Positions 951-3,639 of a DNA stretch of 64,000 bases are shown here, piece after piece. A program made the translations under genes and the position numbers. The notes under the pieces are model-generated. The model did not search any database and was not told the origin of the DNA. It saw only the letters and a list, made by a program, of their open reading frames with translations. The stretch is taken from NCBI GenBank assembly GCA_033442325.1, contig JAWQFM010000014.1:1018391-1082390 (forward strand), given 5' to 3'. This DNA is from Salpingoeca rosetta. Lineage: Eukaryota > Protista > Choanoflagellata. The stretch's first letter is position 1; each line of letters begins with the position of its first letter.

Positions 951-3639
951 TCAGAGGTCTGCCTCGAGGCCGGCGGTGACGGCGGCCTGCACCTGCTGGA
1001 TGAAGGAGAGGTTGATTGCATCGGTGTTGGCAGCGCCGATGGACGTCTCCTCAGAGAACACCTGCATCATGCTCTGTCGGTGCACATTGTGGTAATGGCG
1101 TCGCGGTGTGGGAAAGGGTGATTGACGTGCTGTTGTGAGGTGTGACATGGACACCACAACGTGCAACGCTTTGCTCACACACACACACACACACACACAC
1201 ACACACACCACAAGTGCATGCTCGTACCTGCCACGCTGCGGTGACGTCGAGTTGCTTGGAGATGCGCTCGCATGCTTCCACAAGGCCAGTCTGCAACAAA
1301 TCGCATGATTCACACAGGGAGAACCACGACATTGTGAGCTCACATGCCGACGACGACAACAACAAAACAAAACGGCGACGACGACGGCAGCGACAACGGC
1401 GACGACGATGACACACACACACGCACACACACACACACGCAATACACACACACACACGCACACACACACACACGCAATACACACACACGCAATACACACA
1501 GAGCACTGCACAGCACCTGGATGGCCATGCGCTGCTCGTCCGTGAGCGTCAGACCAGTCCACGTCTCAAGGAAGGTAACGACCTGTGGGAGAAATCACAA
1601 GGTTGCATTCATGTGTTGTGTGAGTGTGTGGTGAGAGAAGGAGTGTGGGGAATGTGCACTGGAAAACATATGTAGTGGGGGGGATGTGCAGTGGGTAGCA
1701 TGTGTCGTGGGGAAGACGGATGCATGCGTGCGTAGTACAACACTGTGTTCACGCGAGCTCACCGCCTTGATGTGGGGTCCATTTGTCTGGTTGATGGCCT
1801 CTTTGACTGCCGTCGTCACTTTGCTGCAATAAGCCTCGCGGCCTGGACACGAACACGACAACGCAGGTGGGTGAGGACAAGCGAGGGTGCAGCAACTGTT
1901 GGAGATAGAGAGTGACAAGGCGTGACAACAACGAAGTCACGAGCAGCATGAATACGATGATTACGCGAGTTGGTGGGCTGGTGGAAAACAGCCCAATGCA
2001 CGCACACACGCACACACGCACACACGCACACGCCACGAAGCAGGGTTAATTCACACACCTTCGTCGTCGGTGATTGCGGCGGATGTGTTGTCGATAGCAA
2101 AGGCGGTGGGGCTGTCTCTGGCGAACATGATGTTGTTGGCGTTTCCTTCGTGTGACCACACAAAGGGCGTGCGATCAAAGTTGTTCAGCAGCACATCCAT
2201 GGCAATCACCGCACCCAGGCTCTTCAGCACCGCCGCCCCGTGCTCCCCGCTGATGTACAATGTGGCGTATGTGTGTGTGTGTGTGTGTGGACATGACAGC
2301 AGTTAGGTGACGCGACGGTATGGATCGGCACTCACTGATGCGGACACGCGCACGCACAAGAATACGCACACGCACACACTCTCACTCTCACTCTCACTCA
2401 CACTCACTCAGACACACACACACACACACATTCATGCATACACCCACACACACACACAAACGCATGCACACACACACACACACACACACACACACTACTC
2501 TCTCTCTCTCTCGTGTGAACCGGTCGGACTACAAGAATACCTTTACGAGCGCCTCACGATGTTTTGTGCACCGCATGACAATAACGTCAATGTATAAGAT
2601 CTAGTACCTGATCCATCTCCATGGTATAAAGGAAACATAAAGGCTCCTGGTCTCGGTGCCAGCGTCATGGCTGATTGTACGCGCCTACGTTCGACTGGCG
2701 TATGGTTAAGGAAGATCACAATAGCGCTGAGCGTGCGACTCATAATCATGTGCCACAAAAGGGAACTGGCTATTTTTGACAGCAATATGCGCCACCGCGC
2801 GTCGTACGTAGTGTGTGTGTGTGTGTGTGTGTGTGTGTGTGTGTGTGTGTGTGTGTGTGTGTGTGTGGGTGGGTGTGGGTGTGGGTGTAGTCAGCATGTC
2901 TCAAAGATCGAGCACAAGTGAGCGGCTTGCATGACGAGCACGCTCGCTCGTGAGCATGGAGAGGCAACACACCGAGGCCGCCGGCAGAATGGTGTACTCC
3001 TGCAACGCCCGGGTGGCGCAGAAGCTTCACGTCCAGCGGCGCCGGCTTGCCATCATTGAAGAAGTCAAACTGGTTGTGCATGAAGATGAACGCGCATTGC
3101 GCGTCAGTGGTCGGCAAGATAGGTCTTGCACACACACACACACACACACACACACACACACACACACACACACACACACACACACACACACACACACACA
3201 CACACACACACACACACACACACACACACACACACACACACACACACACACACACACACACACACACGCACACACACACACACACACGTACATTGTAGAG
3301 GGGCCTGTTGCGGCGGGCCTTCTCTTCCTCCAAGGCCTTGATGTGACCTTTGCACTGCCCAGAGAGCTTGTGTCGCTTCAACAGCACCGTGTTGGAGAAG
3401 GTCTCCTTGCACTCGTCACACGGAAAGCTTGCGCGAACGCCAACCCCACCCAGTAAGTACTATCAATCTATCCGCCACACACGCAAGGCTACAGGTGCAC
3501 GGGCCTTATCAACCTCTCCACCACCACCGCCGCCACCACCACCTGAACAGGTGAAGAGGCAAAGCAACAGCAATAACACAAACAACAACAGCTGCTGGTG
3601 TGTGTCACAGTCACATCACACCACAGCTCACCTCGGCAT
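951..3639 (-). CDS. Actin-fragmin kinase-like atypical kinase with N-terminal C2HC zinc finger (spliced; N-lobe exons missing)
   Basis: Exons 3632-3639, 3292-3427 (FPCDECKETFSNTVLLKRHKLSGQC), 2973-3069, 2059-2250 (LGAVIAMDVLLNNFDRTPFVWSHEGNANNIMF..AIDN), 1763-1842, ~1516-1581, ~1228-1290, 951-1061. Matches the Physarum AFK core as I recall it ([32 protein letters not shown]..PIDS), plus downstream similarity (TWTGLTL..IQTGLV). Confidence 0.85.
2513..2810. other. Compositionally alien, random-like ~300-bp segment (filled assembly gap or foreign insert)
   Basis: By hand count ~49% GC and ~21 TpA dinucleotides, with no CA/GT bias, unlike the flanks. Lies between a (CA)n(CT)n tract and a (GT)n tract. 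No convincing kinase-like reading frame. Confidence 0.7.
3127..3287. repeat. (CA)n microsatellite, ~160 bp, intronic
   Basis: Direct read; representative of dozens of similar intronic tracts in the window. Confidence 0.95.

Follow-up and report, generated by a model that had tools for sequence, protein, structure and literature searches.

In this study, we found that PTSG_05298, a nine-exon gene of the choanoflagellate Salpingoeca rosetta, belongs to a choanoflagellate-conserved family in which a zinc finger is fused to an actin-fragmin kinase (AFK)-type domain, and that the S. rosetta copy, as assembled, is missing the N-terminal lobe (N-lobe) of that kinase. Both the finger-AFK architecture as a conserved variant and the missing S. 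rosetta N-lobe are new here. The gene lies at 951-3639 on the minus strand of the window, that is, the whole 64,000-nt stretch of S. rosetta DNA that was analyzed, whose numbering is used for the gene throughout. On sequence comparison, the copy as assembled is probably kinase-dead, a remnant that could be a pseudokinase or a recent pseudogene. A first-pass annotation of this DNA had proposed a compact, intact kinase gene in a probable holozoan. The holozoan origin is borne out by the organism; the intact kinase has to be given up, since the N-lobe exon is absent and unrelated sequence occupies its place. The gene owes its compactness to the lack of this exon, which would encode the ATP-anchoring lysine, helix C and hinge.

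The locus is already annotated. A protein word search with the finger-containing long open frame returned one protein, the 347-residue product of PTSG_05298, which is a 'hypothetical protein' at NCBI and an 'Actin-fragmin kinase catalytic domain-containing protein' in UniRef. Translation of the window gave a sequence identical to the database protein for every annotated exon. Exons were searched singly from the window; for full-length work, the database record of the protein was used.

The absence of the N-lobe was seen in the protein, in the window and in the whole assembly. In the family alignment, residues 82-173 of the PTSG_05298 protein do not align with its relatives. The other 11 family proteins share GSLGVxFLNLK..GVIVLKQG..EYFCS..P.MRVL..GG..E[FY]..G.TLKHP there. 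These ~105 N-lobe residues, with the lysine strand, helix C and hinge among them, occur in 11 of 11 relatives and have no counterpart in this gene or elsewhere in the S. rosetta assembly; in the PTSG_05298 protein, only three of the 19 family-invariant N-lobe residues have apparent matches and HHSAGGLG is the only N-lobe remnant. The family profile matches the orthologues in one stretch, 1-356, and the PTSG_05298 protein in two. When seven orthologues were searched against the window by tblastn, their residues 1-85 and ~189-354 mapped to exons; residues ~86-188 gave no match in the window on either strand (word size 2, E < 10). An inverted N-lobe exon is ruled out by this search of both strands, nor did the search reveal an N-lobe in other frames or on the other strand of the gap. 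The exon was also not found in the 55.4-Mb assembly with the Barroeca protein, an N-lobe profile or a metagenomic N-lobe exon (see below) as the query. The profile matched only a separate paralogue and, weakly, one further locus, both described later. In AlphaFold models made from the same shallow alignment, the predicted local distance difference test score (pLDDT) is 22-46 across residues 41-167 of the PTSG_05298 protein, versus 76-88 across the N-lobe of an orthologue.

A close comparator indicates what is expected in the gap. L015 is a marine metagenome contig of 1,893 bp (ENA/TARA), found via a 119-residue open reading frame (ORF) that is 80% identical to the kinase core exon of S. rosetta. 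At the protein level it is 74% identical to S. rosetta in the exon of the finger and first kinase strand and 80% identical in the core exon, where DNA identity is 79%. Between those two, at L015 859-1174, lies one intact 316-nt N-lobe exon with 59% identity to Barroeca. Its phase-1 start follows ...GGL-G and its phase-2 end precedes S-GEDG; these phases are those of the S. rosetta donor 2973|2972 and acceptor 2250|2249. The tblastn matches of the seven orthologues in exon 3 end at 2973, so that the orthologous phase-1 donor 2973|2972 is as in L015; the annotated model carries exon 3 on to 2916. Aligned with the unique island that lies in the S. rosetta gap, the L015 N-lobe exon had a Smith-Waterman score of 18, with a shuffle mean of 17.8 and a core-exon control of 183. 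L015 and L016 (ENA ERZ17098661; TARA SAMEA2622858 scaffold) represent an unsampled choanoflagellate, and its gene has fewer introns than that of S. rosetta.

The island occurs once in the assembly. It has no plasmid match, its ORFs have no Pfam match, and one of its 22-mers has no exact match in 185,579 bacterial and archaeal genomes, which is a weak test. A transposon is ruled out by the single copy, and no match was found to indicate a vector or plasmid origin. In the annotated model, the island is read as an exon, here called exon X, which has no homology to any relative. Its GC content at third codon positions (GC3) is 0.48, versus 0.69-0.88 in the seven homology-supported exons. We suppose that the N-lobe core exon (316 nt in L015) was lost, or was replaced by unrelated single-copy DNA between microsatellites. 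Any product would still have the finger, first strand and complete C-terminal lobe (C-lobe) and would be devoid of the ATP-anchoring lysine, helix C and hinge; it would therefore have no canonical kinase function. The outcome would be a pseudokinase that keeps a substrate-binding C-lobe, or a recently disabled gene.

What remains of the kinase is clearly recognizable. The core exon alone matches the Pfam actin-fragmin kinase profile PF09192 with E 7e-11 and 42.5 bits over profile positions 140-191 of 282, and a search of the whole 55.4-Mb genome with this profile ranked it first among the three matches listed. The full protein scores 36.2 bits, over positions 142-204 of 282 only. Since the cut-off is 24 bits, both the exon and the protein pass the family check that the first-pass annotation had suggested. 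The match of the core exon in the Physarum AFK structure (1CJA) spans residues 185-233, with E 3.9e-9. D192, N196-R200 and I226-D227-N228 are family-invariant and align to their 1CJA counterparts, including IDS; the roles of the 1CJA residues rest on alignments and general kinase knowledge. Residues 181-301 of the protein align to 1CJA 185-305, weakly outside the core, and C-lobe helices are predicted with pLDDT 62-82. The catalytic motifs had been called intact: this is true of NNFDR, GNANNIM and AIDN in the C-lobe and untrue of the domain, in which the N-lobe is missing.

The rest of the gene looks constrained. Comparison with L015 over 188 codons gave dN (nonsynonymous divergence) of 0.26, dS (synonymous divergence) of 1.7, which is saturated, and dN/dS of 0.16; identities at the three codon positions were 0.73, 0.84 and 0.46. 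Outside the N-lobe, 33 of the 34 family-invariant residues are kept. The finger and the C-lobe thus look as if they are under purifying selection.

The zinc finger has the pattern C-x2-C-x12-H-x5-C, or more fully F-P-C-x2-C-x3-F-x5-L-x2-H-x5-C, with Cys in place of the last His of a classical C2H2 finger. Exon 1 (ATGCCGAG) joins exon 2 in frame to give MPS / FPC, and the resulting MPSFPC start is identical to the N-terminus of the Barroeca orthologue, so the predicted in-frame splicing of the finger holds. Exon 2 matches the Pfam zf-C2H2 profile (PF00096) with E 1.1e-4 and 22.9 bits, slightly below the cut-off of 25.2, and zf-C2H2 matches with E < 0.01 were obtained for 4 of 8 family members. 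C6, C9, F13 and C28 are invariant in eight aligned proteins, whereas His or Cys occurs at position 22; 12 proteins carry the motif. AlphaFold predicts a beta-beta-alpha fold for the finger in both the S. rosetta protein and the Barroeca orthologue. By analogy, a docking or structural role is most likely for the finger, which may dock a partner or stabilize the N-lobe.

The fusion of finger and kinase is real and conserved in choanoflagellates, as judged from the sequences of the family. A word search with the PTSG_05298 protein gave seven relatives of 354-391 residues, and a profile search of 1.84 billion representatives gave 985 AFK-like proteins. An N-terminal finger was found in only 12 of the 156 proteins examined, which included the best 150 of these 985 matches. 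Eight of the 12 are from named choanoflagellates, namely S. rosetta, Monosiga brevicollis (MONBRDRAFT_22989), Barroeca monosierra, Choanoeca perplexa, C. flexa, Didymoeca costata, Salpingoeca kvevrii and S. punica, and four are environmental proteins. Because D. costata is a loricate species, both choanoflagellate orders are covered. In five of the named carriers (both Choanoeca species, Didymoeca, S. kvevrii and S. punica) the protein is a complete ORF from a transcriptome assembly, and a single exon of L015 encodes both the finger and the first kinase strand. Finger and kinase are therefore on one transcript in the family, and the idea that they belong to separate transcripts fails. The claim of an unusual architecture also stands at 12 of 156 proteins; the compact intact kinase attached to it does not hold for S. 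rosetta. As for the family being unstudied, the gene and its AFK domain were already in UniProt and NCBI, and our literature search yielded neither a paper that deals with PTSG_05298 or the finger-bearing clade nor biochemical data for any member.

Family members are of ~355 residues and consist of a single N-terminal finger and, ~45 residues further on, S. rosetta excepted, a complete AFK-type atypical kinase domain. The orthologues share with the S. rosetta copy the architecture, the length, the MPxFPCxxC start and the HHSAGGLG motif, at 28-44% identity by BLASTP and 29-46% in a MAFFT alignment. However, their N-lobe is complete in every case, and that of S. rosetta is not. Alignment of the Barroeca orthologue covers residues 79-252 of 1CJA and takes in both the lysine strand and helix C. 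The AlphaFold model of this orthologue has a mean pLDDT of 75.5, and the top match of the model in the PDB is by far 1CJA (E 7.8e-12, template modeling (TM) scores 0.67/0.72), with ~18% identity in the structural alignment. Since the domain has the glycine loop, lysine strand, helix C, D..NNFDR loop and IDN metal site, the family members other than that of S. rosetta are probably active AFK-type Ser/Thr kinases with a single C2HC finger, as far as sequences and models indicate. The closest finger-less relatives, among ten looked up, are from the environment or from distant protists such as Gromia, with no animal protein among the ten.

To our knowledge, the AFK-type kinases, as known from Physarum, are the only dedicated actin kinases. 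In plants, AFK-type kinases are stress-triggered tubulin kinases. Physarum polycephalum AFK (1CJA; PF09192) resembles the PTSG_05298 protein in its catalytic loop, GN..NIM segment and ID(N/S) site, all of which align. It differs in having an N-lobe, with an FIVKR lysine strand and an ESETFCS helix, which the S. rosetta copy lacks. It also has kelch repeats, whereas the PTSG_05298 protein ends with the kinase C-lobe, has no kelch match and carries an N-terminal C2HC finger instead. PHS1 of plants and green algae belongs to the same atypical kinase family and is cytoskeleton-directed (PMC8783414). The architecture of PHS1, in which a dual-specificity phosphatase domain flanks the kinase, has been defined (PMC8783414); its AFK-like domain is inserted in a MAPK phosphatase, and the PTSG_05298 protein has neither a phosphatase match in Pfam nor a kinase-interaction motif. 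In fact, Pfam gives only AFK and a weak zf-C2H2 for this protein, which agrees with the earlier description of a gene with no kelch or phosphatase domain. AFK-type domains have been mentioned in non-animal holozoans (PMC8783414). By analogy with Physarum AFK and plant PHS1 (PMC4758236, PMC8783414), the substrate of the finger-bearing family may be cytoskeletal.

Several observations weigh against the idea that the S. rosetta copy is a kinase-dead remnant. The window DNA is identical over 12.6 kb, every microsatellite included, to scaffold GL832966.1 of GCA_000188695.1. This identity to the 2011 Sanger/454 assembly means that the two are the same assembly, and the island is therefore without independent confirmation. 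The AlphaFold (AF2) models were built from only 7-8 sequences. The seven homologous exons have no stops, no frameshifts and canonical splice sites. Exon X keeps the downstream frame, and an equally long frame-compatible exon was found in 4.5% of dinucleotide shuffles of the island. At the sequence level, the intact splice sites, the open exons and the in-frame exon X fit a gene that is still used, which argues against a plain pseudogene, not for restored kinase activity. Because the window is not independent of the 2011 assembly, an assembly or strain artefact should be considered, in which the real gene has a normal N-lobe exon and encodes an ordinary intact zinc-finger AFK, and the island was misplaced via the flanking (CA)n/(TG)n. 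Microsatellites bound and interrupt the N-lobe gap, the source assembly of 2011 combined Newbler and ARACHNE and was edited by hand (PMC4054682), and the rest of PTSG_05298 looks fully functional. However, the island has no second copy at another assembled locus from which it could have been taken, a search of the assembly with the L015 exon as query also failed to turn up the missing exon, the 64-kb window has no Ns, and single Sanger reads and 3-40 kb mate pairs can span the 723-bp gap (PMC4054682). An artefact is a possibility to be taken seriously, and we do not expect it to be the explanation.

Alternatively, exon X may be a genuine, selected exon, and the protein a lineage-specific pseudokinase that uses the finger and C-lobe as a scaffold or substrate trap. 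The frame is kept with the ancestral phases, and the finger and C-lobe appear to be under purifying selection; in general, 98% of S. rosetta gene models have transcript support (PMC4054682). On the other hand, the GC3 of exon X betrays no codon adaptation, and the exon has no homologue, Pfam match or confident fold. Frame preservation is expected ~1 in 22 times by chance, and the hint is weak, since frame-keeping sites are what gene predictors select. Records of the 347-residue protein include no copy derived from a transcript, and no mention of PTSG_05298 expression values was found in the supplementary files examined of the genome paper (PMC4054682). We consider a new function of exon X unlikely. 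It is likewise doubtful, in wider form, that PTSG_05298 represents a lineage-specific choanoflagellate zinc-finger AFK, a candidate cytoskeletal regulator, whose ATP lobe in S. rosetta gave way to an unrelated exon that preserved the frame, with selection still acting on the finger and C-lobe, making it a pseudokinase by exon replacement. That the gene as it stands encodes the catalytically competent kinase for actin or tubulin envisaged by the first-pass annotation is very improbable. In its favor, the gene model is open throughout and the catalytic motifs of the C-lobe are intact, with a Pfam score over the cut-off; but lysine strand, helix C and hinge are all missing, the coverage of PF09192 is partial and the family profile is split, and the N-lobe region has no confident predicted fold. 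A kinase-dead remnant is thus the reading that we favor for the copy as assembled.

The layout of the gene is given in the table. Its introns are largely (TG)n/(CA)n microsatellite.

Table. Features of the PTSG_05298 locus (window coordinates; the gene is read on the minus strand)
Feature	Position	Strand	Description
Exon 1	3632..3639	-	ATG CCG AG, Met-Pro and 2 nt of a Ser codon (ATGCCGAG); GT donor 3631-3630; matches the annotated protein
Exon 2	3292..3427	-	C2HC (C2H2-like) zinc finger, then helical linker; encodes FPCDECKETFSNTVLLKRHKLSGQC
Finger codons in exon 2	C6 3420-3418; C9 3411-3409; H22 3372-3370; C28 3354-3352	-	
Exon 3, homology-supported part	2973..3069	-	FDFFNDGKPAP...HHSAGGLG, lead-in and start of the glycine-rich loop
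Expected N-lobe exon interval	2250..2972	-	Microsatellites and unique island
Repeats in 2250-2972	(CA)n 2893-2811; (GA)n/(TG)n 2512-2330; (CA)n 2291-2271		
Island	2513..2810	.	Single-copy, 298 bp, 48% GC
Annotated exon X	2547..2769	-	223 nt; protein residues 100-174; open, frame-preserving (phase 1 to phase 2)
Kinase core exon	2059..2249	-	D192..NNFDR catalytic loop, GNANNIM, AIDN (DFG equivalent); encodes ...AVLKSLGAVIAMDVLLNNFDRTPFVWSHEGNANNIMFARDSPTAFAIDNTSAAITDDE
Core-exon motifs	NNFDR 2185-2171; GNANNIM 2146-2126; AIDN 2098-2087	-	
C-lobe helix exon	1763..1842	-	(G)REAYCSKVTTAVKEAINQTNGPHIKA; aligns to 1CJA
Exon	1517..1582	-	VVTFLETWTGLTLTDEQRMAIQ
Exon	1228..1290	-	TGLVEACERISKQLDVTAAWQ
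Last exon	951..1073	-	SMMQVFSEE...AGLEADL and stop codon 953-951
AATAAA, likely polyadenylation signal (by inferred function)	854..859	-	~95 nt past the stop codon

The (TG)n/(CA)n repeats dominate nearly every intron of PTSG_05298 (3291-3070, 2893-2811, 2497-2330, 2291-2271, ~2050-2000, ~1500-1410 and ~1215-1175). In L015, (TG)n comes straight after the same donors as in S. rosetta (L015 701-749 and 1506-1549), so the intronic microsatellites seem to be conserved in position. A head-to-head neighbor of 1,334 residues is on the plus strand from 3738 onward. Its coding sequence starts 98 bp from the PTSG_05298 ATG, and this spacing makes a bidirectional promoter likely. On the other side, a TLC-domain (TRAM_LAG1_CLN8) gene runs on the minus strand from ~741 downward and starts 210 bp after the PTSG_05298 stop codon. 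Nothing in the gene neighborhood suggests a functional link to PTSG_05298.

Other AFK-like loci of S. rosetta (C3, C9 and C24) belong to the same kinase family and have microsatellite-rich introns; no N-terminal finger was seen in them, which sets them apart from PTSG_05298. The locus at C24 (~864,200-866,650, minus strand) is a separate, apparently complete paralogue with its own N-lobe and microsatellite-filled introns. It has the HWSAGGLGSTGVFF glycine loop, a VVAKP lysine strand, the helix C EIFATLL and the C-lobe PFIWTNFGNMENIM; its upstream frames gave only low-complexity artefacts against Pfam. Further AFK-domain loci are at C9 (~1,004,790-1,004,915, minus strand; NSDRFPLIWDNRGNPGNVMF) and at C3 (~2,099,537-2,099,981, plus strand; RLPCVWDNKGNMENIMF), where internal stops could be introns or breaks. 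At C6 (400,482-400,613, plus strand) there is a weak match to the helix C region of the N-lobe profile (E 0.04) within a 2,237-codon open frame, which may be a divergent AFK-like domain in a giant protein, or chance.

In conclusion, a finger-bearing AFK is carried across both orders of the choanoflagellates, the sister group of animals, and by analogy it is a candidate regulator of the cytoskeleton of the collar and flagellum. A warning comes with this finding: in the assembly of S. rosetta, the species open to genetic work, the gene has no ATP lobe. Therefore, enzyme work should start from the Monosiga, Barroeca or Choanoeca orthologues, or the locus should be re-checked first. If the loss is true, PTSG_05298 would be a clean natural case of a kinase made kinase-dead by the loss of a single exon.

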